A stretch of 64,000 bases of DNA. It comes from Macrostomum lignano (taxonomy: Eukaryota). The DNA is taken from NCBI GenBank assembly GCA_002269645.1, contig NIVC01000166.1, forward strand, positions 186,001 to 250,000, given 5' to 3'. Position numbers and translations under genes: made by a program. The notes under the pieces are model-generated. The model was not told the origin of the DNA and searched no databases. It saw only the letters and a list, made by a program, of their open reading frames with translations. This document shows, in pieces, positions 2,478 through 55,804 of the stretch; position 1 is the first letter of the stretch, and each line of letters starts with the position of its first letter.

Positions 2478-3530
2478 TCAAACGCATCTTCGACTAGCGC
2501 ATCGCTTGAGGCCTATGAAATCTTCTACAGACTTGTGTTTTCCTGGCTCTTTCCACTGCTGATGCTGTTCGGAACCTGGGGAAATTTCTCCTGCCTGCTG
2601 GTGCTGTTAAAGAGGCCCAAGTGCTTTCCACTCTCAGTGAGGCTCAGCATGCTCATCTGTTGCGTTATCGATTTTTTACTAGTCTCTGTCAAGTCAGTGA
2701 CGCACTATCTATCCCCCAACGTGATGGGAACCATTCTAATGGTGCACGACTACAGAAAGAACACGAGCCACTTTGTGTGCATCGTTTATTACGCCGTCAC
2801 CTTCTGGCTGCTGCACGGCAGTCCCTTCATCCGGCTGGGGCTGTGCTTTCACTCGCTGGCGGTCACGCTGGCCCCGCTAAGGCAGGCCAGTCTGCTTCGG
2901 AAGCGGAATGTGATCATCTACCAGCTAGTGCTGCTCCTGCTCAGCTTTGTGCCATGCATCCGGGTAGCCAGCTCGTTCTGGTCCACCAGATCAGACCGTT
3001 GTCTGTTCCGCAACGATTCAATTGAAGTTTTCTATCGGATTTTCACTGTTTTTGTGAGCAGACTTTTTGTTGTCTGCTGTCTGCTGGTTACGCTGCTGAT
3101 TATCTTGATTAGCATGAGGCGCACGAGGCAACAACTTGGCGGCTCGGTGGTCTCTGGGGTCAGGAGCGGGCCGCAGACAAAGACTGTCACCAGCATCTTT
3201 GTTTCGACCAGTCTGATCTTTTTTGCTTGCGAAATGCCCTACAATGTGGCCAGGGCCCTGGCCAACCTAGAGCTGGTCAAGGAAAGTGTTTCCATAAAGC
3301 AGACGCTGCTCATGCTAAACAACCTGCTGTACCTGAATCCGGCGCTAAACTGGATGCCCTACCTGATTGGCCGCAAGTTTCGACGCTTGTACACCGAGTT
3401 TTACAGCTGCAACAAGTGCTGCCGAAGCAGAGCAACCAACGTCCATGGACAGAGACGCGAGCATATTCTGATGCCAGAGAGCTCTGTTCAAAGAAATAAT
3501 CTTGATAATGAGCAGGTGTACACTTACTGA
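2478..3530 (+). CDS. Class A (rhodopsin-like) peptide-type GPCR, divergent; main coding exon
   Basis: ORF 2535-3530 has seven hydrophobic segments: TM1 'LLMLFGTWGN', TM6 'LIFFACEMPY', TM7 'LYLNPALNWMPY'. The frame stays open upstream to an acceptor (ccattccAG, 2476-77), adding SNASSTSASLEAYEIFYRL with an N-glycosylation sequon. The start exon was not located. Confidence 0.75.
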   Translation, partial: SNASSTSASLEAYEIFYRLVFSWLFPLLMLFGTWGNFSCLLVLLKRPKCFPLSVRLSMLICCVIDFLLVSVKSVTHYLSPNVMGTILMVHDYRKNTSHFVCIVYYAVTFWLLHGSPFIRLGLCFHSLAVTLAPLRQASLLRKRNVIIYQLVLLLLSFVPCIRVASSFWSTRSDRCLFRNDSIEVFYRIFTVFVSRLFVVCCLLVTLLIILISMRRTRQQLGGSVVSGVRSGPQTKTVTSIFVSTSLIFFACEMPYNVARALANLELVKESVSIKQTLLMLNNLLYLNPALNWMPYLIGRKFRRLYTEFYSCNKCCRSRATNVHGQRREHILMPESSVQRNNLDNEQVYTY

Positions 3531-3893
3531 CTGCTGAGACTGAAGTAATTTCCGTGCTGTTTGATGACCATGAGCTCAAAAAGCAATTAAATAGACAGTT
3601 TGAAATCTTAAAATGTTATCTGCGAAACCATCTATTAGCTCTTACGGCAAAATATCCCCTGTAGCACCGTCCCATTCTCCTGTCTTTCTCCCATAGTGAG
3701 GAGTCTTGCTTCTATTGCAATTTTATTCTCTATGAACCCCTTTTACTCGTAGTATCATAGTTAACAGATTTGCTTGCCTCTTTCTTTTTATTTTATTTAT
3801 TTTTTACGTCATTTTATCTGCTAATAAAATGCTTCATTTTAAATGTTTTCTAATCTCTACTATTAAAACAATAATTATAAAAAATAATAATTT

Positions 3894-4140
3894 ATTACAC
3901 CTACCCTAATAGGGAGATGTCCAACCGACAACTCAGCCGCAGTTATTGCTGCGCACGGTTGTTCAGTCCAAGGACTGGGGAGTCGCCACACACCCTCAAA
4001 TACCCCAGCTAATGCTGTCACCCATTTTACAGCTGATTGAACTGAAGCAATACAGAGTTAAGTGTCTTGCTCAAGGACACAAATTGTTCCGATTGGGGTC
4101 GAGAATCGAACCCTCGACCTTTCGGTCATGAGTCCGTCCG
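3894..4140 (-). mobile_element. tRNA-derived SINE with CORE-like central domain, 5'-truncated copy
   Basis: Same sequence as the copies at 27774, 39128 and 41415. The reverse strand carries a B-box-like GGTTCGATTCTC and the block gtccttgagcaagacacttaac...cagctgtaaaatggg. Confidence 0.75.
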
Positions 4141-4797
4141 TCTCTGTACATGAGCGAGTACATGATTTCCTTTTCTCTATGTCTCCCGCCAAACTTGCGC
4201 GATCCCCCCTTCTCACCCAGTCTTCTCACCCACATTTTTCACTGTTATTACTTCTATTTCTACGATTTCACCTACAGTGTACATGCACTCACCCACTCTT
4301 TCCCCAACTGCTCACGCAACTCCCCTATTGTTGGCTCTCTTTCCCCGCCGCATACTATTTTCTTCCGTTATATTACTCTAAGTACACATCTTCATACATT
4401 GTCCTCCCTAATCCTTCCTAAGTTTCTACGTCGTAGTTGGTTCGCACAGCCTTGCACACCCCATTTGCACATTTTTTATCTACTGTTCAACCCGTTACTT
4501 TCCTATTTCCTGGTTTGCTCCTTTGTTCTCTGACCCTCTATCTCTACCGGACCCCCGAATTGCGTCACTGTCTACTCGAATGCGCCCACCTCCCTCCAAA
4601 TCTTCATTCTCCCTCATTTACGAGCGTATCACGGGTGACCCGAAAGATAAAATTTTTTTTAGAAACAGGTCAGTGACGTCAGAAGACCGGGGCCGATCAG
4701 AAAGAGGGAATCATGGCAACGACCTTTGAGAGCATCTCGTGACCAACTAAACACCTTTTGAACACCAATGAAAGTATGCGTAAGGAAGTCTAAAAAC

Positions 4798-5160
4798 CTG
4801 CCTACTGATCACCCTGATGGTGATTCTGGCTAGTGTGAAGGGCACCCGCAAGCAGCTGGGTGGCTCGGTCACCACATACGGAGGTTCACGACTTGGCTGT
4901 CAGACAAAGATCGTGACAAAAATCTTTGGCTCGAACGGCCTCATCTTCTTTGCTTGTGAGAGTCCTTACAGCATTATGAGAGCCCTGGTCAACCTGAATA
5001 CCGTAGAGGAAAGTGAAGAACTATTCGATATATGTTGTTCTCATGAATATGCTCTGGTGTACCTCAATTCCGTGCTATACTGGCTAACTCTTACCTCATC
5101 GGAATAAATTTTCGTCAGAAGTACTTGGAAATATATCGCTGCGAAAAATGTCATCATTGA
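4798..5160 (+). pseudogene. Partial, frameshifted paralogue of the upstream GPCR (TM5-C-terminus)
   Basis: 'ILASVKGTRKQLGGSV...QTKIVTKIF...LIFFACESPY' aligns with 'ILISMRRTRQQLGGSV...QTKTVTSIF...LIFFACEMPY'. After a frameshift near 5090 another frame reads YLIGINFRQKYLEIYRCEKC, matching YLIGRKFRRLYTEFYSCNKC. No N-terminal half is seen. Confidence 0.8.
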
Positions 5161-6143
5161 TAGTTTATTTTTGGAACTCTGAATACTACTTCAGATAATT
5201 CTAGAATAGGAAACTGACGTAAAAACTTGTATCTCCAGCGCATTTTTGGTGAATAGAAATGATTTCTAATGTAGGAAACAATTTCGAAAAATACGCAAAA
5301 TCGTCTGCCGTATTTAAAACAAAACATTTAAATCAGATAAAAGTAAGTAAGTTTCATAGGCGAGCTGACGATACTCATAGGCGAGCTGACGATATAGCAA
5401 GAGGCGCATGCAGTGCAAGATGTCAGGAAACAAAATAGTACATAACGAGCTACTTCATAGAAGGTGAAAAGGTTCGTATTGTCAGTGGCATTCATTTTGA
5501 AATAGCTATAAGCAAAACGAGAAACGAGTTAAAGCGCGATCAAAGTTAGTGCACCACGAAAGCAAAAGCACTATAATAGTTTTTATAGTAATTACGATGC
5601 TCTCGATTGAAGCACGAGGGTCTTTTGATGAATGAAAACAGTAGCACTTAATTCAAAATTACGTAGCTTCATTCATTTGTAGCTAGAAAAATTCCATAAT
5701 CACTTCTTGACAAATAGGTAAAGGATACAGAATAATAAAAAGCCTCTCGAGGTTAACAGGCGTCACATCGTCGACAGGTGTGAGCCACGTGCCAAAAAGT
5801 CACTGACATTAAGCAATTTAGCAGATACTCAGTCGTTTAAGTCATTTTCATAGTTTCAATCATTGCTGATTTAAAGATAGAGCGAAAGAGCTTTGACAAT
5901 TTCACAAAAACTTCTTTGCAAGTGACACTTAATTACTGAATAAATATAAATTGGCTGCTTTTATTGTTTGCAAACATGCAGAAAACTTAGTCTTTCCTTA
6001 GAGCTAGCCATGTCTAATAAAAAATAATGATGTCAAGACGTCATAATTATGAGTTCACCTATCTGTAGGTAGCAGAAAGTAGTTAAAAATTAGCATAAAG
6101 ATGTCTAATTAGTTATTTTACAATCACACAGTTTCGAAGAGGT

Positions 6144-9100
6144 CTATCGTAGAGGTGGAAACCTCAGTCTTTTCCTATTTGTCGATCGGTAGCACGCGAT
6201 CGTCCTGTTTTCATTGGTTGCTGCTGTGGTGTGCGATGCGAACGGCAACACTGACATCAGGTCGTCGTTCATCAAATCGAACTGGTTAATAAGTATGTTG
6301 CACAGCGTCGGAATGAATCTTCCAGAACACATGCTCCCTTTGACAACACTATGGATGTACAGACAGTCCTCATGTTGACCTACGTTTAGGTCGCCGACGC
6401 TTCGAGCCTCTGTTCGCGCCTGAACATTGCCTCGGTTTGCTTGAACAATAAAAACCTTGGGCTTGTTTTTCAGCTGCGGGCACATTCTGAACTGTTTGTA
6501 CACATTTTTCAGTGAGACGCGACTTCCGTCAGCTGAGTAAACGTAGCCCTGCTCTCCGTGCGACAGGATGCAAAGAACAAGGGCGTCCTCCTCAGCGTAC
6601 TCTTCTGGCTGCCGGTCAATCGTCAGGAGGTGACCGAAGGTCTCATGAGACGGGTTATTCAAGCTGAGGACGTCGAAGCCTAGCCGACTAAAGCAAATAT
6701 AAAATCTATCGTCCATGAGAGATCGCGGTGGAAGATTTGTCTCTGGTGGAAAATTAGTGACTTGTATTAGGATGGCTCTTCCGCGACGTGCACTTTGCAT
6801 CGGATAGTACGGAGAAGAATCTGGATCGTCTGGACCACCGCCATCATCGCCACCACCGCCACCACCTCCACCACCACCACCGCCACCATCGCCACCACCA
6901 CCACCGCCACCATCGCCACCACCACCACCGCCATCTCCGCCGTGGCCGTTGCCTCTGTCGCTTGGCTCCTCCACAGGAGAGTTGGATGGATCGCCGCTCT
7001 CTTCAGGTTGGTAGCCGCAGCCGGTTTCGCTATCAATACTTAATCCACTTTCGCTTCCTTCGCTTGTTGGAGCGCGCTGTAATCTAAAATTATAATATTT
7101 TTATTGCCTGTGTTTGAATACTAATCCAAAGTAACTACGAGATCAATATGCAATAGCAAATAACTTACATCAAGCGTGAACAGTTGAGGTGACCCGAAAA
7201 CTTCGCCCATTGATAAGCGTTCATATTCCTCTCTCCGGTCAGGCGCCAATAGTTCGCGTCTTTCATCAACTCTCCGAATATTTCAATGACCTCGATGTGC
7301 CCGCAGCGAGCAGCCCAGATCAGAGGTGTGTTGCCGAAGAAATCTTTCAGCCATAAATTTGCTCCGAAGTCACACAACATTTTGAAAGTTCCTGCGTGTC
7401 CCTTTTTCGCTGCGTGGACGGCAGCTGAGTATTTAAACACGTCCTGAAAAACAATTAGCATTTTCTTAGGGTTTCATTCATACCAAAAAGGTTTAAATTT
7501 TTAACCTCACCTGGCAATCTATATCAGCTTGCATTTTGATGAGCTGCTCCAAAACAGATTTCTGGTCATTTATGGCCGCCAGAATCAGAGGGGTTTGTCG
7601 AAGATTATTTTCTCTATTTACTTCTGTCGTCATAGTGCTGGCGTTGTTTCTCAATATTTTCTCAAACGCTATCAGGACTTCTTTGTGGCCTTTGAGGGCG
7701 GCCCACGAAATGGCTGTCCGGCCCATTACATCCTGGACACTGACCAGGGATGTGTCAGAATTTCTATTGAGCAGCGATAGTACCAGGTCATGTTTGCCTC
7801 TGGCGGATGCGATTGTTAGCAGAGTCTGATTCAAAATCCCAAACTTCTGGGCTGTATTCTCCTGAGATCTGCACAGGGCTGCAAGCTGCGCGTCCGACCA
7901 CTTATCCGGGGACGCAGAGCTGAATATCCTAATTTGTGATGCGATAGATGGATGTAATGGATGTGATACGAGTATCTTTCACTTTTGATAGCCCCAGATG
8001 TATAGCATTTTATTTGTCTATCTAATAAAATAACAATTAAAACATCAAATGGAATTTTATTATCAATGGTTGCTAATAAAGTTTGTACTTAAGAGATTAA
8101 AGCAGTGGTATCTGCGGATGTCTAAAACCAAGAAACAGTGACAATAACTTACTGCACATCGTCAGATGCAGCGCTATTTAAGAAGAATTTCTTGGTCAGA
8201 CTGGTGACTGCAGAAGCTTCAGTACCGAATTTTTCGGATCCACCTTTCATCTCGGGCATGCCCAGCCGCCTGTTCACCTCTGCCACCACGTTCACAATGT
8301 GCTCTTTGTTGAATTTTTCCTCTTGAACGACGGAGCATAGAACCTCAGCAAGCGATCCATTCTCTCCTAGTGAGCCACCGCGGCAGAGAAGAAAGTCTTT
8401 CTCAGGAATTTTAAACGACGTCTCTTCCAGCGGGCAGGCGTTCAGGGTTTCAGGCTGCTGCTCAGTCTGAACAAAGAAGATCTTCGGTTTGCCCTTTAGA
8501 AAGGAGCACTGGTTAACTCGGAACCTGGCCACGATGTCTCTTACTTCGACCTCTTCACCGTCGCTAGCGAAGAAGCTGGCACCGGTCCCGTGTCCGATGA
8601 TGAAGCACACGAAGCTGCCCATGTCGCGGAGATCGGACCTGACTATTTTGTTGACCGCTGCAAAGATGTCAGCGCTAGTAGGCTTACTTGTGCATGGTTG
8701 GATTGTAAAACCAAGGTTTTCGAAGGTGTCGGTAATTCTTTTAACTTCCTTCTGTTGATTGTGGCTTGAGCTGCGATTGTAGGTCTCGACACTTATTACC
8801 AAGCACAGGCCTTTTGCCGTAATGCTCTCTGCGTATATGTCGCTTTCCGGCTTGTTTGAAGTTGAACTAAATGAAAATGTGCAAAATAGATTTCCATATA
8901 TTTTCACCACAATGATTCGAAAGATTCAAATTTTAGCAAAGATTTGTGTGAAGCTGACTTACGCGACAACTTGCTCTTCGCCAATCCTAACATGCGAATG
9001 AGCCCCATCAAACTGTAGCTCATGTTCCTCTTGGCCTTCCGTTTCAAACGCAGGAACCTTGCACGTCAGTCCTCCTTGTTCTGGTTTAGAAAAATATTTA

Positions 9101-10358
9101 AGTTAGTACTAGATGTACGTCACCTGGTGCCAGTGGCCAAAATGCCAGGTCAATTCGATATTCAAGCCTTGTACGAGCTAGAAAGCCAGAAAAGTTAGGA
9201 ATCGAAAAGTCGGGAAAAACATGCATGTGATTGCTTTACCTTGATCATAAATGAGAGGATGCTTCATCAATTCGATAGCCAGCATCCGGTCACTCGGTTG
9301 TTTTTCAGTGCATTTGTTATAGAAATCTTTCAGATTAGCCGAGCAACTTTCCGGAAGCACTGGAGCCCCCTGCCGTTCCACCCGGCGAACAATGGCCAGC
9401 ATGTTCTTGCACTCCCAGTAGGGCCGTTTGGCGATCACCATCTGGTAGATCACGCAGCCGAACGCCCACACATCGGAGGCGCAGCTATAGGGAGGGTCCT
9501 CGGTCTCAGAAGACAGGAACATCTCAGGCGCCATGAAGTGCGGGTCGCCTCTCTCCCCAGTGGACGGATGCTCCGTTACTGTTTGGAGAATCTGGATGGC
9601 CAGACCGAAATTGACGATCACAATTCGATCGCCCGGACAAACGAGCACCGTCTTGCAGTTGATGTTGCGGTGAATCACCGGATCGTTGAGGCCGTGCAAA
9701 TATGAAAGGGCGTCGCATATCTGAAATCAGTCGGTGATTCAGGATTTTAATATCGTTGTTTAAATAAGAATAGTGTAAGAAAGCAGCCGAACACGTTTTT
9801 AAAATAATTGCCAATTTTTACTGTTAATTTTCTTATCCGCGTTTAAATAAGTGGTCATGGACTTCTTAGTGAAGTCGTGTATTTTTCTATTAGCTCATTA
9901 GCTCGTAGAAGTCATTAAGACCCTTCGAGTACCCTTCAAGCCCTGGCTGGGTTCATGGCAAAAAAAACTTTTGATAATGTACAATTTTGCAATTATTTAT
10001 TACGCACCTGTCTTGTAAGATTACAAATGCTCTTCTCCGGCAAGCCTTGTTGGGCGGTGATATGCCGTTCCAGAGTTACCGGTCCCGAAAGCAAGCTCAT
10101 CTGTACGGTCACGCACATCTGCTCCTTGTCCACCATGATGCGTTTGAATTTGACCACGTTTTTGTGATCCAATGCACACAGTTTCTTAGCCTCTTTGTCG
10201 CAAGCCTTAGTCAGAGTTTCTAGCTTATCATGAGCTCCAGCTTCGACAAGATGCCATGGCAGGCGGATTTGTTTTACAGCCTGCAGTTGCTCTGCCTCGC
10301 CCACCGCTTCGGCGTAAGTTTCGCCTCGATCGCCTCTCGATAGAAGCTCCCGGACCAT
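6144..10358 (-). CDS. Pseudokinase - caspase-like - 6x ankyrin - Gly-rich - caspase-like fusion protein (1095 aa), 7 exons
   Basis: Exons 10358-10008, 9720-9240, 9080-8963, 8866-8153, 7919-7511, 7443-7169, 7083-6144. All introns are GT-AG with phases 0,1,2,2,0,2, joining into one 3288-nt frame. Kinase motifs: AVK, HRN, NFG, APE, DVWAFG. Caspase motifs: IGHG/KPKIFFVQTEQ and LSHG/KPKVFIVQANRG. Ankyrin example: TPLIWAARCGH. Confidence 0.85.
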
Positions 10359-11635
10359 TGCTTGGCTTAGGGGAGAGTTTCAAAACAGTGTTTTACAGCT
10401 TCATGTGAGCTTCAAATTTACCTGCAATTTTTTGCTAGTGCAGTTAATGTTTAACTGCAGTGTCTCTGCTTAGCCGTAAGAAAGTGGCAAGGCTTTTTAA
10501 AAGCTGTCTAGCTATAGTGTCATTGGTAGCAAGCTTACTCTGCCAAATAGAGGCTTGTTTCTCTTGCCATTATAATACCTTATCTGTCTTTTCTCTTTTC
10601 TACCCCTATTTTTGTAGCGCTGTCCAATAATATTTGGTTCTGTATGAAGAATTAAGTACAGTCTAGACAAGTACTTGCGTTGTAGGGTATAGACTGGGAG
10701 AGAAGTAATCTGGGGGAGGGTTAATGTACATTAAGTACAGCACATTGCTGTCAGGCAGCATTCTGGAGAGTTTTACACACTGCTTTGCATATCAAATTGA
10801 AAAGAAAAGAAAAATAGTACAGCAAGAGTTGCATTTCATACCCATTTGTGCAAATGTTGTCTCTTGGCTCTCATGCCATTTTATAGCCAGCAATTCTTAG
10901 AACCTGATCTCGTAGCATGGAGGCTTAAAACCAACTGGTTTGTAGTTAGAAATTTGGTACCTTATTCTACTGTACAGCGCTTTCCGCTTAGCTAGCTAGT
11001 GCAGCCAGTCCCTATCTGTCCTATTTTAGAAAAAAACAGTCATTTGGTATATGAATAATAGCTAATTTCTCACTTAATAGTAGCTATATGTGAGTTCGCT
11101 ATTGGTAATTTCAACTAGCGGCCGTTGCTCACAGAAGCTAGTTGCAAACTTTTTTTGCCTGTAAAAAACTGTTGAAACATAACAACTAGTGAGAATTAAA
11201 CAATCGCAAGTGCGACTGTTTGTGGCTTAAATACAAGGTAAGAAGCTTCACGACAAGTGCTTATTTGCTAATCGTACCAGCTTTTGTAGTTTCAAGCGAC
11301 ATGTAGCCCCTGTCAGTGACTCCAGGGGGAGGCGTGGCGGGCCACATCATCCACGCCGAGTCACACTGCCCACAGGCGGAGTAGGAGGTGCTGCTGCTAG
11401 CGCTGCAAACGGGGAGGACAGACATGGGCTCGGCGCTTGTTAAACTGCCTTCTGGCAGTTTAACCGCGCACGCTCAAGCCTTCACACACGCTCTGTGACG
11501 TGACGCTGCATGATACTGTTTTATTATCGTGTATGCATATAGGCTATCTGGGGTTAAATAATTATCCTATCTGTCGCTTTGTCCGAAGATATTTACGTTG
11601 GCAAAAGACCGCAACCAATTTTCCTTTACTTCAGC
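10359..11635. promoter_or_regulatory. Shared divergent (bidirectional) upstream region with probable non-coding first exons
   Basis: 1.28 kb separates two outward-facing ATGs. The + ATG sits 2 nt after an acceptor (tttacttcAG, 11633-34), and a candidate donor AAG/gtaaga lies near 11238. Promoter activity is inferred from the layout only. Confidence 0.5.
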
Positions 11636-14600
11636 ATGGTCAAAAACTACTCAATCGGGGAACAGATCGGTCGAGGCGAGTTTGCTAGTGTCCATGCCGT
11701 CACCATCAAGGACCGGAGCCCAACAGCCACTTGTGTAAAGCTGATCAAACTGCCAACGAACTCTGAGCAAGTCTTAGACAAAAAAGAGCTCACTGAATTG
11801 GTAGAAAAACACAAGCCACTCAGAGAACTGAAACACCGGAACTTGGTTCAAATTGAAGACCTTCATGTCATTCAACAAGACTACTCTATCGCAGTGTTCA
11901 TGGAGCGGTTTCAAGGAAAAACATTGGAATATTTACTGAAAACGAAGGGTGCCATCACCCAAGAAGATAAGATTCGGCACTACTCCAAGCAGGTGAGCAC
12001 TGCATGGATTTCTATGACGTGTTAATTCACAAGCCCCATAACCAAACAGTCTCTGACTTATTTCTAATTAATTAGTTGGTTTTTTATTTAATTAAGCACA
12101 ATTCTCAACTTCTCTGCAGATCTGTGAAGCTTTGAAGTATCTCCACCACGACTTAAAGGACCTCGTCATTCACAGAAACATCTGCAGTAAAACAGTTATG
12201 ATAGACGACAACGATTTAGTTAAGTTAATTGACTTTGGCATATCCATTCAGCTGATGGATGCGGTGAGCCATCAGGTGACGCAGTGTCCGAGAGGCCACC
12301 CGAACTACATGGCTCCAGAGTTGTTCTTGGAGGAATCCAGCTCTAAATTCCAGAGCCTCTACAGTCGGGGCTCAGACATCTGGGCTTTCGGTTGCGTTGT
12401 GTACGAGATGACCACTGGTGCGAAGCCGCTTGGAGATTGCAAAAATATGCTGGCCATAGTTAACAAAATCAAATATCACGGAGCTCCAAACCTACCGGAG
12501 GCGAGCTCTGAGCAGCTGAGAGACTTCTATAAAGGCTGCATGAGAATGAATAGGAAAGAGAGAATGTCGGCAGCAGATCTGCTACGACACGAGTTTCTCA
12601 GTCCTGGTATGCAATTTTATGGTTTTTTGAGCTACATGTATATTTTTCACTGTTTTTTGGCTAGTTGTTACCTAATATAAGCTCTCTTTTAGTATATGAC
12701 AAACACTGGGACAATGTCCGTCTGCTGAGCAGAGGAGGCTTCGCAGAAATTCACGAGGCTCTCACGGACAAGGGTATCCGTTGCGCCGTAAAAACTCTGA
12801 AGCTGCCCCTTCAACTCGGTGATCAACGTGACAAAGTGCAGAGAGAAACCGATCGAGCTATTGAAAGCGAGATGAACCTGTGCAGATTACGGCATGACAA
12901 CATCGTAAAGATCTTTGACATTGTGCAGCCAGAAATTGCCACGGTTGTTGTGTTCATGGAGCTGCTGGATGGCAAAACTTTGGAATTGGTGATAGATGGA
13001 AAACCACTGGATGAGGGAATGATTCGTCTTTTCGCTTCACAAGTAAGCATGAATACTGAGTTGAATAATCAGGTTTGCTCATTATCCTGATCGCATTACT
13101 TTTGTTTACTCATATTTCAGATCTGCAGCGCACTTAGCTACATGCACAATCAACCAGAAAAATCAGCCGTGATTCACAGAGACCTCAACTGCTCAAATAT
13201 CGTGATTCTAGATGATAACAAAGTCAAGTTGATTGATTTTGGCTTATCGCACAGGCTAGGATCGTCGATTAGTCACAGCACCGCCTCGTCAGTGAAGGGC
13301 ACGCTGAACTTCATGGCGCCGGAGCTACTGGGTGACGACGAAAAAATTGTGTACAGCACAGCATCAGATGTCTGGGCATTCGGTTGCGCCGTCTACCAGA
13401 TGGCCACTGGAGAGCGGCCGTTCGAGAAAATTAAAAACCTAAATCGTCTTATTCGCACTCTGAAAGAGCAAGGCGCCCCATTATTGCCAGATTCTTGTTC
13501 GAGTCTGCTGAAAGATTTCTATGCCAGTTGCGTTATGCGCCAGCGCTCGGAGAGGGCGTCCGCTATAACGTTGATGAAGCACGAGTTTCTGACTTTCAAG
13601 TAAGTCTGCTTGCATTTTGTCTATTAAAGTTCATATTTTTGTATCAACGATGGCTCTGTATTTTTGTACTTTTAGTCGAGCATATTGTTTCTTTTAATTC
13701 CTTTAATTAGAGCCTCGGAGTACGAGGATGAAGACCGATACGAATCCAGTGCTAGCCAGAAAGGAATGTGCGCAATCATTGACATGCTCCCATCTGGCTC
13801 GGACTCAAAACTCTCTGCTAAAATCAGCAAAAGTTTAGAAAAGTTCGATTTCATCGTCAAGTCGCTACCAGACGCAACCTGTCAAACCGCTTGGAGCTTC
13901 ATCGGGGACATCGCAAACAGTCAAGAGCTTGCAGACTCGAAATGCTTTGTTTGTTTTGTTATAGCTTCCGGTTCGAACGGACAACTGTACTCAGCTGACA
14001 ATGATGAGAGCATTGAAATCAGAGATCTGCTTGCCAGGTTTCGCTCTAGCCAGTGTCCCAGTCTGAAGGACAAGCCGAAGCTTTTCTTCATTCAGGCCGC
14101 GCAACCGGCCAGTGCAGCCGCCGGCTTGGACGAATCCACGACGCGAATTCGAGACGATGACTTTCTGGTTTGCATCAACGATGCCGACCTGGATTCATCG
14201 TTTGTCGGGATATTGTGCACTGTTTTAGAAGAGGACAAATTTAGCGACCTAGACATTGAAGGAGTTGTGGATGTGGTGAACGATCGCCTAAAACTGGAAC
14301 CGTTGGTTAAAGCGAAAAACCGGGCACTTAAATCCATGTCGGAAGCAGTTTCCACTTTGACGAAGAAATTTTACCTGAAGCCGGAACGGGTGAAACCGGA
14401 TCCCAGGTGAGCTTTTTCGTTGTTTTAGAGGCTTATTGAGAAGAATGCACAAAAATTAGCTAAATCAGCAACACTAATTTCTGGTATTCGAGGAGCACTT
14501 CATCCTGCAGACAAACAAGTTTCCAGTACCACCACCGAATTAACCTACTTTGTAACCTACTATTATTAACCTACTTTAACCTACTTTATTAGGTTAAAGT

Positions 14601-17547
14601 AGGTTAGGTTAGGTTAAAGTAGGTTAATATTAACCTACTTTAACCTACTCAATGAAACGATTGGGCCCGATGATGCCATTTTGATCACTTCCACCACAAG
14701 AGCTTTATTTAAAACAGTTGTTTAGTGAATAGGATCGAGGGATTTCTTATTCTTCCCATTGATTCATAATGTTTAGCAGAGAAAGATAACGAATATTTCA
14801 GAGCGGAGTCGCCAGAAAAGTGGGACGATATACAATTGAAGAGGCTAATAGAGGAGGAGGCAAGTCAATGCGCGAACCCGGACTTCACCAGCAAAAAGTA
14901 CGGCCCGTTGGGACAGACGCTGCTGTCAATCGCAGCTGACAAGGAAAGCAGCGAGTTAGTCAAGCTTGCGCTCCAGACAGCGACCACTGTTCCATCCATT
15001 CACTCGGATCTCGATGTGATGGGCAGGACGGCCCTTTCCTGCGCCGCAGCCAAAGGATCAGACGCGGTTCTGGCCGCTTTCGAGCAGGCATTCATCGATG
15101 CGGCCGATGTTCAGAAATCAGTGGTTAACGAAGCCAACTATATGCGCCAAACTCCTATCATTGTGGCAGCCAAGCAAAACAGGACGAATGTTCTCGAGAA
15201 GTTGGTCCGGATGGGAGCGTATATCAATCAGAAGGTGAGGCTGTGTTGATACCCACTAGTTTTACTCAACTATCACAAAAATGTCCTATCAACTCTGAAT
15301 CACAAAAACAGACAGAGACAGAAAGAAACAATGCATGATAGAACCCAAAGGCTGATTCAGTTCAAGAAGCAACTTTATCGCCTTTATCAAAGAGCTCAGG
15401 AACTTATACAGCGCAGACACATCCGCCCGGCCTCTGCACGACCAAGCATGATGTTCTCTTTTACTGCCTCGATGACGGCCTTCTTAAAGCTATTGAGATG
15501 AAACAAATACGTTTGCGTTTTTGCGATTGCCTATTTGCTTTCAGGTTGAGATTTTAGGAATTTTGAGACGCTTTAGTCCCGGTTCCGTCAGCAAGCTCTA
15601 CTGCAGCATGGCCGGTTCCAAGGACCAGGCTGCCAAAATTTAATTTTCAAAACAGTCGATTCTGTTTCGAAGTGTAGAACCCTTTTGCACTTTTTCCGTA
15701 TTTCAAGCACCTGGCAGGCAATTCGAATTCTTCCGATCAACTTGCTGGCTTCATGCTGCTCACATAATCCTTATCCAGATGCATCTTGCGGCAAAACGTT
15801 TGAAGGGTTTTAACTCTGGGTCTATAGTCGTCTGATCTGTATGACCTTTAACATTTGTAAACATTAGATATTTGGCTACAAGTGGCCACTGGACAGTTAG
15901 TGTTTATGACGTATGGCGTCTCTACGCTCGTACATTTCATTATATTTGAGTTCGTACAAATTCTGCACATGCAGCTTATATATGAATTTACATTTCAGGA
16001 TATTGTAGAAGCCACCGCATTGATCTACGCGGCTAAATTCGGATTTGTTGACGCGGTGCGCAAGCTGCTGGAACTCGGCGCCGATGCTGCTCTCGCAGAC
16101 CGTTCGGATCAAACACCGCTAATTTGGGCAGCTCGCTGTGGCCACACCGATGTTATCAACGCTCTATCTGAAAAGCTCAATAGTCTGGAGCTCTGGAACC
16201 ACAGGAGCACGCGGTTGCGCAACTTAACCGCGCTTGAATGGGCTAAGCTCTGCGGCCATGACGCCACTGCGGACAGGATTCAGCAGATGTAAGTAATTGG
16301 CGACGTAATTTTTGTTCCAATGGCTGAAAGCTCTGTAGAAATCTGCACCTCCTGCTTTCATGGGCGTAAGAAATTGGCCGTCACGAGGGTCCTCCCTTTC
16401 CACCAGACCATTTAAAGTTTTTTTCGTGAATATCCCCTAAGCTAGTAAACTTTTTTCCTGTCTTGAACCCTCACAATGACACGCATTAAGCCATCCATGA
16501 TCCTGTTAAGCCGTTAAGAAGAAGTTTTTAATCATTTAAATATTTTAAATGATCGATGCAAACTATTTCAGAATTCAACAGATAACCGGAGCGACACAGG
16601 AGGCGGAAGCCACTACCGACCCACAATCAAGGGGTGGCGGTGGCGGTGGTGACGGTCCCAGTAGTGAAGCGACAGGAACTTCCGCCGGAGGAAGCGGCGG
16701 CGGAGCCGTTGGTGGAGGAGGTGGTGCTGATGAAGTTGGTGGAAGGGGTGCCGGTGGCGGAGGTGCCGGTGGCGGAGGTGGCAGTGGCAGTGGTGCCGGT
16801 GGCGGAGGTGCCGGTGGCGGAGGTGGTGGTGGCGGAGGTGGTGGTGGCTGGCCTATTTACCATATGAACAGCCCAGTCAGAGGCCTAGCAATAGTTATCA
16901 GTCGGAACACGATTCCACCAAATGCAGGTTTTCAGAACATACATTGGGTGCCGGATCAGCAGACTCAATCTTTTGTCGGTTGTTTAAGCGACCTACGCTT
17001 CGATTTCTTAGTGCTACCAAATATTCCGAGAAACCTTTATTATAATCTCCGAACCACGGTACTCAATTGGCCGACGTATACCATCTCTGATTCTCTTCTC
17101 CTCTGCCTGATGTCTTATGGCGAACACGGCCGAGTGTATGACTGCAATGGAGAGCGTGTTGAGCTGGAAACAATGTTTCGACAGTTCAGAGAGTGTCCGC
17201 TGCTCTCTGGTAAGCCGAAAATATTCATGGTCGATGCTGGTCGCGACATTCCTCATGAGAGACTGGTGTTGGAGCAGGCAATTCAGGAGAACGCGGGCCA
17301 GCACCAGGACTGTATTTACATTTACAGTGTTGTAAAAGGAAACGCCTGCTACCAAGAGGTAGAGAACGGCTTTTGCTTCATGCAGTCCATGGTGAATTTA
17401 CTGCGCTGGCCAAGTTTCGATTCAGCCACTGAAGATTTTGCGTCCTTTCTGACGAAAGTCGTCAGCGACGTGTCGAACAAGTGCACAGCAAAGCAGATTG
17501 TCTGCCACACGAGCACCTTGCAGCGTCATATCATTTTTGGAAATTAA
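11636..17547 (+). CDS. Pseudokinase - kinase - caspase-like - 6x ankyrin - Gly-rich - caspase-like fusion protein (1355 aa), 8 exons
   Basis: Exons 11636-11992, 12120-12606, 12693-13042, 13121-13599, 13711-14406, 14802-15234, 15999-16288, 16572-17547. All introns are GT-AG with phases 0,1,0,2,2,0,2, giving one 4068-nt frame. Kinase 1 has HRNICSKT/DFG. Kinase 2 has AVK/HRDLNCSN/DFG/APE. Caspase motifs: IASG/KPKLFFIQAAQ and MSYG/KPKIFMVDAGR. Confidence 0.87.
14540..14650. repeat. Short AACCTACTTT / AAAGTAGGTT direct and inverted repeat cluster in an intron
   Basis: The motif repeats about 7 times forward and about 3 times as reverse complement. Confidence 0.7.
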
Positions 17548-18709: not shown

Positions 18710-19161
18710 CAGTGGCGTATACTCGAGAATTTTATTTGCAGGATTTGCAACATTACAGAGACCAGTATTTGGTCTCTAGGTTAATACCTCGATCGCTTGT
18801 TGGGCGCCCCTGTCTCTTGGTGGGTGCCCCTGTCTCTTGGTGGGCGCCCCTGTCTCTTGGTGGGCGCCCCTGTCTCTTGGTGGGCGCCCCTGTCTCTTGG
18901 TGGGCGCCCCTGTCTCTTGGTGGGCGCCCCTGTCTCTTGGTGGGCGCCCCTGTCTCTTGGTGGGCGCCCCTGTCTCTTGGTGGGCGCCCCTGTCTCTTGG
19001 TGGGCGCCCCTGATCTCTTCTAACAAGAGAAGGTAATTAAACACGAGCCCCTCTGTCATTCGTCAAGCTCGCGGTTACCTCTTATTTAGTTTCTTAGGGA
19101 TTACAATTATTATAAGGGGCAATTGGGGGGGCACCTCCACCCTAAGCTGCGTACGCCACTG
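18710..19161. mobile_element. Non-autonomous hAT-type element (MITE) with an internal 20-bp minisatellite
   Basis: TIRs CAGTGGCGTA (18710) and TACGCCACTG (19161). A perfect 8-bp TSD, AGACATGT, lies on both sides. Internal array (TGGGCGCCCCTGTCTCTTGG)n spans about 18797-19012. Confidence 0.9.
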
Positions 19162-20132: not shown

Positions 20133-23100
20133 TGATGTGTTTGGAAATGAAATCGTAGTGTTTTTTCGTAAAGTAATTTGTATATTTATTTTCACTCCGA
20201 AGAGTGGAATCGTAGGCAAGCGCAGTTCTGAGAAAACAAAGTTCGTCTGGGCCGTCTCTCTTTCTAGAGAGCAAACGTTAGGAGGTTAGGCCATAGATGT
20301 GCTTCAACTAAACCACACATCATCTTCCCCCTCCTCAAGAGAGTCTCATTCTTATAGTTCTTCGATTAGCCGTCTTGGGGGTATGCCTTTATTCATTCGA
20401 CCAGATCGCCGGGCTTGCGGGTGCTGGACCCTTGTGGTGGGCTCCAGGTCAATGTCGACCGTCGACGCCTGGGCCGGCCTGAAGGGAACCAGGTTCCGTG
20501 CAGTCCAAACTTTTCCATTGTCGAGGCGATAGGTGAATCTGCCCAAAACTTCTTGAATGAGGAAGGGTGACGTAAATGGTGATTTGCCTTTCGGCACATG
20601 TGGGAGTCGGATGCGCACCATGTCGCCCAGTTTGAAATGTTGCCGAGTACTCGTTCCCGCTCCAGTTGCTTGCGGGTCGCTAGAATCGCAGCTCTTTAGC
20701 TCCTCCGCAATTGGCTTCTCAATTTCTAGTTTACGGGGCTGAAACTTTGTTCGGATATCCCGCCCTAGCAGCAGTCGTGCTGGTGAGTCGCCGTCTTCGT
20801 TAGGCGTCGTCCGATAGCTGCAGATGACTTGCTGCATTCCCTCTTCGAAGCTTCTCTTATCCGTTTCAAAGGTTTGCGCAGCATGCTTAAGTGTCCGGTT
20901 AAAAACTTCTACTTTACCATTTCTTCTTGGCTCATATAGCGGAACGCAGTCATGCCTGATGTCGCGCGAGGCGAGGAAGTTTTTCATTTCAGTGGAGACG
21001 AAGCTGCTTCCATTGTCGGACACCAGGACATCCGGGTTTCCAAAACGGTCGAATGTTTCCGTCAGCCACTTGATAATCTTCGCCGATCTGATGTCTCCAG
21101 TCAGGAGAATTTCTGGGTAGGACGAGTAGTAGTCTATCAAGGCAACAATAAATCGCTGAGTTTGAGGAGCTATCGCGAATGGGCCAGAGATGTCGATTGC
21201 CAGCTTTGACCACGGGCGCTCAGGCTTTTGTATAGAATTCCCGTCTGGTACAATGACTCTATGGGACTTTGCGCTGTCCTGACAAGCTAGGCAATGCTTG
21301 ACGTAGTTATTGATCGCTCTGTCCATACCTGGCCACCAGTAAGCAGATCGCAGGAGACGCTTCATCCTCACAATGCCGGGGTGTCCTTCATGCGCGCGTT
21401 TTAGTATTTGCGGTTGTAGTTTAGAAGGCGGCACAATTTGTTCGCCACGAAATAAAATGTTCTTGTCAATCGTCAGTTCATCCTGGACTTGTCGAAAGGC
21501 ACTAGCTTCCGATCGTTTGTCGATAGGTCTGGAGAGTCGCGTAGCTTCCATTACAATCTGCAATAGCTCATCGGTCTTCGTCAGTTCTTGCAAGTTCTGC
21601 ATATTTATGTTAATTGCACTGCTGACTGCAAGGATGCTCTTGACCATATTTTCGTTGTCCATATCGACATCTCTTATTCCGTCGTTAATGGGGAGCCGCG
21701 AAAGGGCATCAGCCACCTTGTTGGTGCTTCCTGGCTTGTAGATAATATCGTAACTGAATTCGGACAGTCTTACAAGCCAGCGAGTGAATTTAGCTGATTT
21801 TGTCTTATTAGTGTGGTGTCGAAGAAGACTTGTGAGCGCTGAATGATCGGTCTGCAGGGTGAACTGCCGTCCAAGCAGATATTTGGCAAAATGCTCACAT
21901 GCCCAGACGCAAGCGAGGGCTTCGCGCTCGTTCACTGCGTAGTTTCGTTCCCTATCAGACAGTGTGTGTGACGCGAAAGAGATAGGTACTTCGTTACCAT
22001 TCGGCTGTCGTTGCGAAAGGACCGCTCCTATTCCAACATCTGATGCGTCTGTTGTCAGGATCGTCGGCAAGTTTGGGTCAAAAATAGCCAGTTCAAGGCG
22101 TTCGTGGAGCAGCGACTTCACTCGTTCGAAGGCTTTTTACTGCTTTTCTCCCCAGATAAACCTCTGGTGCTTTCTTGTCAACATTCGTAGGGGCTCTGTA
22201 ACGTTAGCCAAGCCTGGCAGGAAGTTCGAATGGTAGTTGATCAATCCAAGGAAGGATCGAAGTTCTTCGGAATTCTTCGGTGCCGGTGTATTCTTGATAG
22301 CCTCTAGCTTCGCGGGGTCGGACTCGACGTTCCCAAGTTCGTTGATAATGTAGCCAAGGAAAGGCACTCGTTCTTTTCGGAGTATTGACTTGGCGGTGTT
22401 GATTCGGAAGTCTTTTTCGTGCAGCAACTTCAGAACCTTCCTTAGTTCTTCGTCGTGCTCCGCGATGGTCTTTCCGAAAACGAGAATATCGTCAATGTAT
22501 GCAATCGTGTGATCACAACCAACTAGTGTGTTGCTAACGCATCGTTGAAATACGGATGCGGAGTCCACCAAGCCCATTGGCAGTCTATTGTAGGCATAGA
22601 GTCCGATCGGGGTTGCAGTTGTGGTTAAATGCTTGCTTTCTTTGTCCAGCTCAATGTGGAAGTAGGCGCGCTTTAAATCAATCTTAGACTTGTAGCGGGC
22701 GCCTCGGAGCTTCAGAAAGAGGTCGTTGATGTTTGGTACGGGGTACCGGTCAGGGACTACAAACTTGTTCAGGTGCGACAGGTCAGTTGTAATCCGTACG
22801 CTTCCGTCGGCTTTCCACACGGTAACCAAACCGTTGACCCACGAACTTTTCTCGATTGGGCTCCAGATTCCGCATTCCTCCATTTGCTTGATCTCTGTGA
22901 TGGCAGCCTCTTGGCGGGCAAACGGAATTGTCCTAGTGGGGATGCACTTGGGAATTGCATCAGAGCGAATTGTAATTTTATGTGTGTGGTCCGGGAAGGT
23001 TCCCAGTGACTCCTCGGACAACTTAGGAAATTGTTTTTTGACCTCGCTGAATTGGTCAGAAATGGCTGAAACCTGCATCGATGATCCGTCGAACTTCAGT

Positions 23101-24558
23101 CCCAGGAAGTTGATGAGATCCAGTCCGACAATTGCTTTCAGGCGATCCTGCGTGACGAACAAATTCGCTTCGACTGAACGATCTAGGAGCCTCACATTTG
23201 CTGTGATACAACCAAGGACGTCCGATATGCTAGAGTTGTCGTAATTCACAAGAGAAGAGGATATCGGCTTGATTTTGCACTCTGGCCAAATGCGCTTGAG
23301 GTCGGACTTTCGGATAGTCGATACTTCGGCAGCCGTGTCGAGAAGAGCGCTGTAGCTGCCTCTCTTGCCTACAAGGGTGACTTCGACGGACGGCGCCTCG
23401 TGTCTGCTGACCAGTCTCACCTTCTCGCGGACATGGTTGACGCTCTTCTTCTGGGTTCTCCTCTGGGATATTATACACTGCGCTGCAAAATGGTTAGGTT
23501 TGCCACATCCTTTGCACAATTTTCCAAGGGCTGGACACTTTGGGTCACGATAGAGATGAGTGTTGGATCCGCAACCCATGCACTGCTTATTATGTTGTTT
23601 TCCCTTGTCAAAGCGTGCGGGTGGGGCACCGGCATCTGCTTTCCGTCGACGTGGCGGCCCACTTTTAGAGCTCGGCTGGCTTTGCACTTGCTGAACTGGG
23701 GCTGGAGCGCCGCTTCGGATTATCTGGCCGGTCTCGGTGGCTGCTTCATCGGCCCGCATAGCGGTCAGAAACGTCTGCAGATCGATGGCTTGCTCAGTTA
23801 ATAGCTTCTCCTGGGTGCTCTTTGACGCGCAGCCGATGACAAGCTGCATTGCCAGTTGGCGGTCTTCGCCGGCTCCGTACTCGCAGTCCGTGATTAGCGT
23901 GCGAAGGGCAGTAAAGTAGTCATTTACCGACTCGCCCGTTTCTTGCTTGCGGCGTCGAAACTCATATTCGGCTCGGACGGGGTTTTTCGCCGTGAAAATA
24001 TTGGCTTCAGCTCATCGACATACTCTGTGAAGCTGGAGTTCTCTTTGTCCTTCACGCAGTGTGCGTAGAGAATTCGTCTTCCTTCAGACCCCAAAGACGT
24101 ACGCAGAAATGCTTTCTTAAAAGCCTCCGAGAGCTGTGTGCCTGTTGTCGTCTCTGTAAGGTAGTAGAAATCCGATACCTCTCTTTGCCAGATGTCCCAC
24201 TTGGTTGTCGGATCGCCAGGTAGCTCCAGAAACTTGGACGGTTGTGGTATTGAGACGCGGATTGCTTGGTGATTCGTCGTCGAGGCCAATGGTTCTTGGC
24301 TCGTATTCGGCTTTCCTACCGACGGTGGCGTCTTTGGCGGCATCGGTTCGCAAATCCTCGTCGCCAATTGATGTGTTTGGAAATGAAATCGTAGTGTTTT
24401 TTCGTAAAGTAATTTGTATATTTATTTTCACTCCGAAGAGTGGAATCGTAGGCAAGCGCAGTTCTGAGAAAACAAAGTTCGTCTGGGCCGTCTCTCTTTC
24501 TAGAGAGCAAACGTTAGGAGGTTAGGCCATAGATGTGCTTCGACTAAACCACACATCA
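20133..24558 (-). mobile_element. Full-length Ty3/Gypsy LTR retrotransposon, Mag-like
   Basis: 190-bp LTRs at 20133-20322 and 24369-24558 with TGATGTGT...ACACATCA ends and one mismatch seen. 5-bp TSD ATATC. PBS TGGCGACGAGGAT matches a tRNA-Ser(GCU)-type 3' end. PPT is GAGGAGGGGGAAGA. Two Gag CCHC knuckles; domain order PR-RT-RH-IN. Confidence 0.95.
20352..24343 (-). pseudogene. gag-pol of the LTR element, with one frameshift (~23995) and one in-frame TAA (22139-22137)
   Basis: Motifs: protease LLDTAA, RT YIDDIL, RNase H TTDAS, integrase HHCC and D-D-E (AIDIS, VSDNG, KVEVFN). Changing frame near 23995 restores 'TAKNPVRAEYEFRRRKQETGES'. The frame continues in phase after the stop (KAFERVKSLL). 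Confidence 0.9.
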
Positions 24559-31300: not shown

Positions 31301-32001
31301 CCCACCTGTGAATCTCACCCAACCTCACCTGAGAATCTCACCCAACCCCTATCCTCCCAGCCGAGACCCGGAAGCTGATGGTGCGGGCCTTCAAGCAGAC
31401 TCTGCAACAGTCGCAGATTCGCCAGCTAAACGAGGCCATCTCCCAGGATCCCAAGCTGATCAGCCTAAGCGGCATGTCTCCATCCCGGCTGCCCGAACTG
31501 GTTGAGCACAATCCCCTGGTTGCTATCGAGGTGCTGCTCACCTTGATGAAGGCCAGCTCGCCCCAAGTCACAGACTATTTCTCTGTCCTAGTGAACATGG
31601 AGATGTCCCTGCACAGCATGGAGGTTGTCAACCGCCTGACAACCAGTGTTGAACTGCCTGCGGAGTTCATCCACCTGTACATCAGCAACTGCATATCGTC
31701 GTGCGAGTCAACCAAGGACAAGTACATGCAGAACAGGCTGGTCAGGCTGGTGTGCGTGTTCCTGCAGTCGCTGATCCGCAATAAGATTATTGACGTCAAG
31801 AATATCTACATCGAGGTGCAGGCTTTCTGCATCGAGTTCAACCGCATCCGGGAGGCTGCTGGCTTGTTCCGGCTGCTAAAATCCTTGGAGTCCAGCGATG
31901 GCAGCGTCGACTCCGCCGCCGCTTCTGCCGCTCTGGCTGCTGGCGGCGGCGGCCCGGGTTCGAATCCGCCTAGCGCCGCCACCACGCCTTCGAAGCCGTA
32001 G
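28312..32001 (+). CDS. CNOT11: CCR4-NOT subunit 11 (C2orf29-like); first coding exon not located
   Basis: Exons 28312-28417, 29632-29907, 30527-30917 and 31361-32001 join in frame. They read [18 protein letters not shown]...ALYLLWE...NPF, ELLKKTP, DELVWM...QWDASMC and [13 protein letters not shown]...[14 protein letters not shown]...[21 protein letters not shown]...FCIEF, all recognisable CNOT11 motifs. Confidence 0.93.
28485..29575. repeat. G-rich purine satellite (GGAGGTGGTGAAG / GGAGGTGGGTGAA variants) in a CNOT11 intron
   Basis: Directly visible; the + strand is almost free of C for about 1.1 kb. Confidence 0.95.
30015..30500. repeat. 21-bp satellite (AAACCATAAATCATCATTCAG) in a CNOT11 intron
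   Basis: More than 20 tandem units visible. Confidence 0.95.
30985..31350. repeat. 23-bp satellite (CTGAGAATCTCACCCAACCCCAT) in a CNOT11 intron
   Basis: About 15 tandem units visible. Confidence 0.95.
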
Positions 32002-32345: not shown

Positions 32346-32864
32346 TCCTCCCTTGAGTTTCGAGTTGAAGTATCTCTGTTGTTTTCTCTGCTTTTGCATC
32401 TGTTAATGTTTGAGTTCAAAACCCCTGAATTAAAATGCATGTACCTGACACGGCATTTTGTAAGCATCTAGATACTTGAAGTAGTTAAGGTGTAACTAGG
32501 CTGTTAGTAATATAAATTAATTGTTATGATAGGTTCTGTCGTTCTATTTACTGCTTGACTTCTTTGCATTGCTGATTTGTATTTCTGAATGATAATAACG
32601 TTAAAACTTCTTCTAGTTTTACCCGTGTTCAACTCACTGTCTGTCTAAAATCTTGTTGTCTATTGCCCCATCCTGACTGTTGACATACTCCTTAGTACGA
32701 GTATTTTATAAGGAAAATTTAAAATAAACAATAAATCATCAGTGCAACATTGAGATTTGGTTTGTGTACATCTCCCTTATCGCCTCTAGTGTTTGTGAAA
32801 ACCTTATGAATATTTTTATTGTCGATTTTTTCTATCTAAAAGATTTTAACTTGGTGTGCCATCT

Positions 32865-34826: not shown

Positions 34827-34881
34827 GAGCATACAAACAAAAACGAATTGGCACAGTTTCGCTTGCACAGCCAGTCGGCAG

Positions 34882-55207: not shown

Positions 55208-55223
55208 AATATTAAAATAAAAA

Positions 55224-55680: not shown

Positions 55681-55804
55681 TGAGGTTTAAAACCCCACTT
55701 TATCCAGCTTCATAAACCTAACACTACTTATAGGATGTAGAAACAGTTCAACTTTTCTATCAGGGTGGTCACCCTCAAATTTTTTTTTTATTTTAGAGAA
55801 AAAA

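Follow-up and report, generated by a model that had tools for sequence, protein, structure and literature searches.

Catalytically inactive caspases that regulate real ones are known mainly from cFLIP, the product of CFLAR in the human CFLAR-CASP10-CASP8 gene cluster, and C. elegans has two protease-inactive caspase homologues, CSP-2 and CSP-3, that restrain the auto-activation of CED-3. The N-terminal caspase domain of coral caspase-X is inactive and predicted to pack against the active one in the manner of cFLIP:caspase-8, and its removal results in more killing (PMC4715348). Caspase-16 shows the same inactive-plus-active layout (PMC12198278). In flatworms, in which FADD was not detected, caspases with ankyrin repeats (ANK caspases) have been described as restricted to parasitic species, and one kinase-caspase of Macrostomum lignano was placed as sister to them (PMC11463336). 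Here we describe two adjoining M. lignano genes, at positions 6144-17547 of a 64,000-nucleotide stretch of contig NIVC01000166.1 (the window), each encoding two caspase-fold domains that have lost the catalytic cysteine, together with kinase-like and ankyrin modules. From their sequences and by analogy with known systems, we give a probability of roughly 0.55 to the view that these genes are selected non-catalytic paralogues that modulate or scaffold an active gene pair.

The four caspase-fold domains, two in the gene on the minus strand and two in the gene on the plus strand, lie well above the curated cut-off of the Pfam family PF00656 (Peptidase_C14; 21.4 bits), at 64.4, 79.5, 66.7 and 62.9 bits. 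In the minus gene, domain A (8153..8828, within one exon; PF00656 E 4e-22) keeps the His of the catalytic dyad (IGHG, in IIGHGTG at 8601-8581) and has Glu in place of Cys (QTEQQ, in VQTEQQ at 8472-8455), and domain B (6147..6821; E 1.6e-17) also keeps the His (LSHG, in ILSHGEQ at 6569-6549) and has Asn in place of Cys (QANRG, in VQANRG at 6446-6429). In the plus gene, both residues of the dyad are lost: domain A (13711..14406; E 3.1e-18) has Ser for His (IASG, in VIASGSN at 13958-13978) and Ala for Cys (QAAQP, in IQAAQP at 14090-14107), and domain B (16849..17544; E 4.6e-17) has Tyr for His (MSYG, in LMSYGEH at 17107-17127) and Asp-Ala-Gly for Gln-Ala-Cys (DAGRD, in VDAGRD at 17230-17247). The register of these positions was fixed by phmmer alignment to solved caspases in the PDB (E 7e-12 to 5e-16), where 'kpkiffvqteqq' of minus A stands opposite 'kpkvffiqacqg' of caspase-8, 'kpkvfivqanrg' of minus B opposite 'kpkmffiqacrg' of caspase-2, 'kpklffiqaaqp' and 'viasgs' of plus A opposite 'kpklffiqacrg' and 'llshge' of caspase-7, and 'lmsyge..kpkifmvdag' of plus B opposite 'ilshgd..kpkvffiqac' of caspase-3/8. 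The dead motifs cannot be put down to chance or misalignment, since an alignment of the family shows intact SHG and QAC/QSC motifs in paralogues and since three of the four domains recur with identical motifs in a second copy of the locus. We conclude that the four domains are true caspase-fold homologues without the catalytic nucleophile, and the first-pass annotation of the window, which had been made from the letters alone, was right about the missing Cys in all four.

The KPK-hydrophobic strand and the C-terminal strand (TSLTKKFFL, STNRKRLRF, STLTKKFYL and STLQRHIIF) are retained in each of the four domains, as the same annotation had noted; the C-terminal strand is the one through which caspases dimerise during their activation and regulation. 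The caspase fold that it had assumed is borne out by the Pfam matches of all four domains and by AlphaFold2 models of two of them, minus B (predicted local distance difference test score, pLDDT, 82.5; predicted template modelling score, pTM, 0.85) and plus A (pLDDT 80.2, pTM 0.82), whose structural matches are caspase-7, -3 and -6; in Foldseek searches, minus B matched caspase-7 (E 4e-18, template modelling (TM) score 0.76-0.84) and plus A matched caspase-7/procaspase-7 (E 2e-17, TM 0.74-0.81). A replacement Cys or Ser nucleophile, the finding that was to overturn that first reading, is not seen next to the former Cys position of minus A, minus B or plus B, either in the sequence or in the family alignment, and in plus A a Ser lies five residues downstream of the substituted position. 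The family alignment also shows that both Arg residues of the S1 pocket are gone from both window A domains and from plus B, where they are Ile and Gln; minus B keeps the first (PPRS, 6731-6708), and its second is ambiguous, as the loop that follows the site is 6 residues shorter. The proposal that the His pattern is gene-specific stands for the window, with His/His in the minus gene and Ser/Tyr in the plus gene, but not for the wider family, in which domain A follows lineage: His is found in the minus gene and its counterpart P0003, Ser in the plus gene and Cys in P0041. In domain B, this position is His in every family member except the plus gene.

This wider family was defined by an exhaustive profile search, name look-ups and a test for the family's own ankyrin block, and comprises at least seven distinct ankyrin-caspase genes in M. 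lignano. P0003 and P0041 share the whole layout of the window genes (kinase, A, ankyrin, B), and P0056/P0189, P0103 and P0045/P0065 have other N-termini and share the ankyrin block with them. The B domains of all these genes keep SHG and QAC/QSC (six paralogous B domains of five other M. lignano genes in the alignment; P0003 reads QSCRD and P0041 reads QACRG), and both S1 Arg are kept in those of P0003, P0041, P0056, P0103 and P0045. Domain A, by comparison, is dead in all four kinase-bearing genes, with QTE, QAA, QAE and QTH at the Cys position; none of the A domains retains the S1 Arg, and they share with minus B a shortening of the substrate loops. These alignments point to a dead A domain with a live B domain as the ground state of the family, A being an old pseudocaspase and B the working protease, and among the members found it is only in the window genes that domain B is dead too. 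Protein and profile searches found no kinase/C14/ankyrin/C14 architecture outside Macrostomum, where the domain A profile recovered nothing but ordinary caspases with a single domain (best E 1.5e-19); for both A and B, the nearest relatives there are effector-type caspases of the ordinary kind, about 25-31% identical. Tandem-caspase proteins of cricket, oribatid mite, fish and amphioxus were rejected as family members: they lack the family ankyrin block and come from unrelated taxa, and their high scores arise because those of two ordinary caspase domains are summed. Three further observations concern individual members. The dyad positions of P0041 A (about 12434-13093 of locus L002, described below) are swapped: IIGCGSN puts Cys where His is expected, and VQTHRD puts His where Cys is expected. 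A combination of His and Glu at the two dyad positions is common to minus A and P0003 A. Ahead of the ankyrin block, P0056/P0189 (PAA59752.1, PAA80948.1) and P0103 (PAA93319.1) match Mab-21_C (cGAS/Mab-21-like) weakly, at E values close to the cut-off of Pfam (1.6e-4 and 2.7e-5), and their caspase site is intact; a sensor-caspase fusion is a possible reading of this arrangement, and the lead is weak, the Mab-21 region of P0056 finding no match among PDB sequences.

The two window genes are multi-exon genes arranged head-to-head, visible as exon-sized open reading frames (ORFs) on both strands with short introns between them; canonical GT-AG junctions join the exons into two clean reading frames, with five introns in the minus gene and seven in the plus gene. 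The minus gene (6144..10358, minus strand) has six exons (10358-10008, 9720-9240, 8828-8153, 7919-7511, 7443-7169 and 7083-6144) and encodes 1043 amino acids (aa), the frame being kept across the junctions, and the plus gene (11636..17547, plus strand) has eight (11636-11992, 12120-12606, 12693-13042, 13121-13599, 13711-14406, 14802-15234, 15999-16288 and 16572-17547) and encodes 1355 aa. By Pfam, the order of modules is kinase-like, C14-A, ankyrin, poly-Gly linker and C14-B in the former, and kinase-like 1, kinase 2, C14-A, ankyrin, Gly-rich linker and C14-B in the latter; the first-pass annotation had not mentioned the kinase-like and ankyrin modules. The ankyrin repeats (Ank_2/Ank), which lie between A and B and directly N-terminal to B in both genes, are encoded by two exons in each case, at 7169..7919 on the minus strand (67-nt intron; 47-52% identical to the P0003 and P0041 counterparts) and at 14802..16288 on the plus strand (764-nt intron). 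Directly before domain B of the minus gene there is a poly-Gly/Asp linker of 38 aa, nearly all Gly (6834..6947), and before that of the plus gene a Gly-rich low-complexity linker (16585..16848); Gly/Ser/Pro-rich linkers occupy the equivalent place in the plus gene, P0003, P0041 and P0056. No Pfam match to a death-effector domain was obtained in either gene, kinase, C14 and Ank being the only domains found. The divergent start codons are separated by 1.28 kb (10359..11635), which from the head-to-head layout is presumed to be a shared, bidirectional promoter. The same layout recurs in two other loci, L001 for the second copy of these genes and L002 for P0003/P0041, and no further copy of the gene pair was found elsewhere in the 64-kb window.

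Loss of catalytic residues extends to the kinase-like domains. That of the minus gene (9241..10358, Pfam Pkinase over two exons) has HRN for HRD (VIHRNIN, 9678-9658), Thr in the catalytic loop and NFG for DFG (9615-9598), and the first of the plus gene (11636..12605) has HRN (12165-12185) and Thr, with DFG kept. Both are predicted from these motifs to be pseudokinases. P0041 reads HRQ, Thr and DFG, and P0003 HRD, Thr and DFG, so that the HRD Asp is lost in three of the five kinase-like domains of the family. Only plus kinase 2 (12606..13599), with VIHRDLNCSN at 13169-13198 and IDFGLS at 13232-13249, has HRD, the catalytic-loop Asn and DFG together in the motif alignment, and it alone looks capable of phosphorylation. 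The Gly-rich loops are degenerate in all of these domains, and the beta-3 Lys and APE are kept. The minus protein is thus predicted to be dead in all three enzyme folds, and in the window pair as a whole every caspase site is dead and the kinase catalytic Asp is missing from two of the three kinase domains. The family resembles pseudokinase scaffolds in that the minus gene, plus kinase 1 and P0041 have lost the HRD Asp and kept the fold, and differs from them in that its kinases match generic PLK/PAK/MAP3K/STE20 types (E about 1e-24 to 1e-26) and no one kinase family. The best solved matches are likewise generic (PLK2, PAK, MAP3K2/5, STK24 and WNK, E 1e-22 to 3e-26). The 60 matches listed include no RIPK, and a specific assignment as RIPK-type, which would have provided a link to caspase-8 biology, was rejected.

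The closest counterparts of the window genes form a pair of their own. In locus L002 (NIVC01000166.1:124892-150261), the P0003-like gene (about 3437-7997, minus strand), annotated by NCBI only as a 559-aa kinase plus C14 fragment, and P0041 (about 10291-15367, plus strand) also stand head-to-head, each with the His and Cys of its domain B dyad intact. With the intact-B genes as outgroups, the four kinase-bearing genes group as a clade (100% bootstrap). The domain-A tree separates the minus gene and P0003 from the plus gene and P0041 (100% bootstrap), and the kinase tree joins the minus gene to P0003 (60%). The simplest history suggested by these trees and by the layout is that two head-to-head genes, their B domains still live, were duplicated as a block; it would follow that the Cys was lost separately in the two window B domains, to Asn in one and to Gly in the other.

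That the window genes are nonetheless real and maintained is indicated by a second copy of the locus. Both window proteins are 97-99% identical to M. lignano database entries, the minus gene being 97% identical to UniProt P0001/P0002 and P0004/P0005 being copies of the plus gene (kinase 2 98% and 93% identical). Locus L001 (NIVC01000006.1 of GCA_002269645.1) carries both genes, arranged alike and 96-98% identical in DNA, and the window locus is syntenic with this 1.1-Mb M. lignano contig; given this arrangement and identity, the window is another copy of a nuclear locus of the flatworm, either an allele or a homeologue. In L001, the NCBI models have the same starts as both of our gene models (the plus gene has 1356 aa there) and split the minus gene at the poly-Gly tract into products of 846 and 243 aa (L001 6557-10732, corresponding to window 10358-6144), although its last exon is open in L001 and gapless relative to the window. 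The UniProt entries P0001, P0002, P0004 and P0005 are all without domain B: P0001, P0002 and P0005 end before the Gly-rich tract, and P0004 passes through it in another frame. As a result of these split or B-less models, domain B of both window genes is hidden in current annotation. Between the window and L001, all twelve comparable exons are gapless and stop-free, without indels in 1977 codons (1043 of the minus gene and at least 934 of the plus gene are open in both copies), and the twelve GT-AG introns are all kept. The dead motifs of minus A, minus B and plus A are identical in L001; plus B lies beyond its end and so outside this comparison. The two copies, about 3% apart at synonymous sites, differ by 45 synonymous and 50 nonsynonymous changes, against a neutral expectation of 22% synonymous (p = 6.7e-8), corresponding to an omega (dN/dS, the ratio of nonsynonymous to synonymous rates) of 0.29 for the minus gene, 0.34 for the plus gene and about 0.3 when pooled, and exon identity (96-99%) exceeds that of long alignment blocks consisting mostly of intron and flank (93-96%). 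Across the older split between minus A and P0003 A, dN is 0.29 and dS 1.64, giving an omega of 0.18. For the B domains, synonymous sites are saturated relative to the older paralogues; B-domain dN is 0.61-0.70 in dead-versus-live pairs and 0.60 between live ones, and a relative-rate comparison of minus B with P0003 B (25 versus 27 unique changes, P0056 as outgroup) shows no faster decay of the dead domain.

These data are consistent with non-catalytic proteins that are under selection, somewhat relaxed in plus B. On our favoured reading, the window proteins would act without cutting, their caspase folds serving as dimerisation or docking modules that may pair with each other, with domain A in cis or with the B domains of active paralogues, and the ankyrin block and kinase-like domains would recruit the protein. 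A caspase activation platform specific to flatworms would have its threshold set in this way, in the manner of cFLIP-L and caspase-8. The first-pass annotation had suggested that a real caspase might be bound and tuned, and P0003 and P0041, with the same architecture and an intact B dyad, are the candidates to which the alignments point. The precedents of caspase-X, caspase-16 and the flatworm ANK caspases, together with the retained C-terminal strand, lead us to propose that the live pair is a lineage-specific caspase platform, with domain A as its built-in regulatory partner, and that the window pair is its non-cutting counterpart. A more specific version, in which the dead pair sets this threshold through mixed complexes with the live pair and the platform is independent of FADD, is put forward tentatively, and we would sooner bet against it than for it.

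Several observations weigh against the view that the window genes are selected modulators or scaffolds of the active pair. In the C14 domains alone, the two near-identical copies differ by too few changes for selection to reach significance (9 synonymous, 17 nonsynonymous, p = 0.11). Plus B has more unique changes than P0041 B, whether P0056 is the outgroup (37 versus 25, p = 0.13) or a less clean one (47 versus 19, p = 6e-4), which fits relaxed constraint. The B-domain and ankyrin trees do not resolve the live-dead gene pairings, the support for a grouping of the minus with the plus gene being 47% for domain B and 20% for Ank+B combined, so a single loss of the Cys in a common ancestor of the two window genes is compatible with the sequences. 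Finally, the locus tags of the window genes are not mentioned in the literature that we searched. The first two of these points would be expected if the window genes were redundant duplicates drifting towards pseudogenes, with the catalytic losses as a functionless first step. Both B domains lack the Cys, five active-site residues are lost from plus B, dN/dS over the C14 domains alone is about 0.55, a value not significantly below 1, and M. lignano has many recent duplicates, of which the 96-98% identical second locus is an example. Drift of this kind is hard to reconcile with two copies that are both open, with no exon indels and all introns kept, with the pooled omega and its p value, with exons better conserved than the mostly intronic and flanking blocks, with the low omega at which the dead domain A has been kept since the much older split from P0003, or with the confident folding of both modelled domains, and we consider it improbable.

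It is also conceivable that each window protein is a self-contained scaffold, in which A and B of one chain fold together over the poly-Gly linker as a pseudo-dimer and signal via the kinase or pseudokinase and ankyrin modules, without any dealings with the active paralogues. The dimer-interface strand is kept in both domains, a long Gly-rich tether directly precedes B in every family member, intramolecular pairing of an inactive with an active domain is predicted for coral caspase-X, and plus kinase 2 keeps HRD, Asn and DFG. This scheme leaves unexplained why the nucleophile was lost in both members of one pair and kept in the other; we regard it as rather unlikely on its own, and it is compatible with modulation of the active pair rather than exclusive of it. 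That the domains are cryptic enzymes, performing cleavage or some other reaction with a different nucleophile or residue pair, such as the His and Glu of minus A, seems very improbable. The conservation of these two residues in P0003 A, the exchange of Cys and His in P0041 A and the persistence in minus B of the His, the Gln of QAC and the first S1 Arg could be taken as signs of such chemistry, but no Cys or Ser adjoins the old site in three of the domains (the Ser of plus A being five residues away), the His too is lost from both plus-gene domains, the S1 Arg are missing from all A domains and plus B, and the substrate loops are shortened in the A domains and minus B. We know of no caspase that works without its Cys. 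Lastly, the first-pass annotation had envisaged pull-downs with 'host caspases', which implies a viral decoy, for which viral FLIPs offer a general precedent. This frame is refuted by the five and seven spliceosomal GT-AG introns, by the 97-99% identity to annotated nuclear proteins of M. lignano, by synteny with the 1.1-Mb contig and by the surroundings of the genes, which include CNOT11, a cellular gene, as well as minisatellites and the remains of transposons. The DNA is nuclear and belongs to M. lignano itself.

The notion of non-catalytic partners of active caspases can be set against the known systems with which we began. The window domains are like cFLIP-L in being caspase folds without the catalytic Cys that derive from a duplicated active caspase gene and are kept by selection, with active paralogues on hand to pair with. 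They differ in that the window genes have kinase-like and ankyrin modules in place of death-effector domains and two pseudocaspase domains per chain, in that their closest solved and database relatives by sequence are of the effector type (caspase-3/7, insect caspase-1), in that the dead genes adjoin each other rather than live ones, and in that their heterodimerisation is putative. CSP-2 and CSP-3, for their part, are small, partial caspase-like proteins, in contrast to multidomain chains that combine two complete folds with kinase and ankyrin modules. As in caspase-X and caspase-16, each window chain contains two caspase domains, of which the N-terminal one is caspase-like and lacks the dyad; P0003 and P0041 match the inactive-plus-active layout exactly, whereas in the window genes the second domain is dead as well (QANRG, DAGRD), and here the two domains stand behind one or two kinase-like domains and are set apart by an ankyrin block with a Gly-rich linker. 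The duplication that gave rise to two domains in this family was probably independent of that in caspase-X and caspase-16; the A profile finds no similar domain outside Macrostomum. With the platyhelminth ANK caspases, the window genes share ankyrin repeats directly upstream of a caspase domain, and the published M. lignano kinase-caspase is evidently a member of the same family; the sequences retrieved here included no ANK caspase of a parasite. The published report makes no mention of catalytic residues, a second caspase domain, paired loci or dead members (PMC11463336). Pseudocaspases and dead-plus-live tandem caspases are thus kinds already known, and what is new is a chain with two dead caspase folds and a pseudokinase, and a dead gene pair that mirrors a live one.

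The rest of the window holds a housekeeping gene, mobile elements and repeats. Downstream of the pair, an exon-sized ORF (31378-32001, plus strand) matches CNOT11, subunit 11 of CCR4-NOT (E 3.6e-52). Two long ORFs of 589 and 570 aa at 20352-23849 (minus strand) encode reverse transcriptase, RNase H and integrase, apparently the pol of a long terminal repeat (LTR) retrotransposon interrupted between 22121 and 22137. At 54170-59703 (plus strand), an ORF with an integrase core (rve) is followed by one with DNA_pol_B_2 and Endonuclease_7 matches, a combination that we take to be typical of Maverick/Polinton-type DNA transposons. Minisatellite arrays with units of 20-38 bp and up to 47 copies lie at 947-2031, 18796-19019, 28490-29574, 29999-30511, 30979-31349, 32861-33652, 34257-34827 and 47129-47846; the first, of 23-bp units, is present beside the genes in L001 too, and the G-rich 27-bp array at 28490-29574 accounts for a spike in GC skew (+0.63) and for a spurious ORF of 376 aa. 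Weak, sub-threshold matches to a rhodopsin-type seven-transmembrane receptor (2535-3530, plus strand, E 2e-4) and to a TRPM2-like domain (62985-63905, minus strand, E 1.7e-4) may mark exons of other genes.

The finding of at least seven ankyrin-caspase genes in M. lignano corrects the record, in that such caspases are not confined to parasitic flatworms. A single family is now seen in three states: one with a caspase only behind the ankyrin block, one with a dead and a live domain, and one with two dead domains and a parallel decay of the kinase. The two gene-pair loci of like layout therefore constitute a compact natural experiment on the change from protease to regulator, in an animal in which RNA interference (RNAi) and transgenesis are established. 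If the dead pair does set the threshold of the live one, the logic of caspase-8 and cFLIP would have been reinvented independently in this lineage, using whole duplicated gene pairs.

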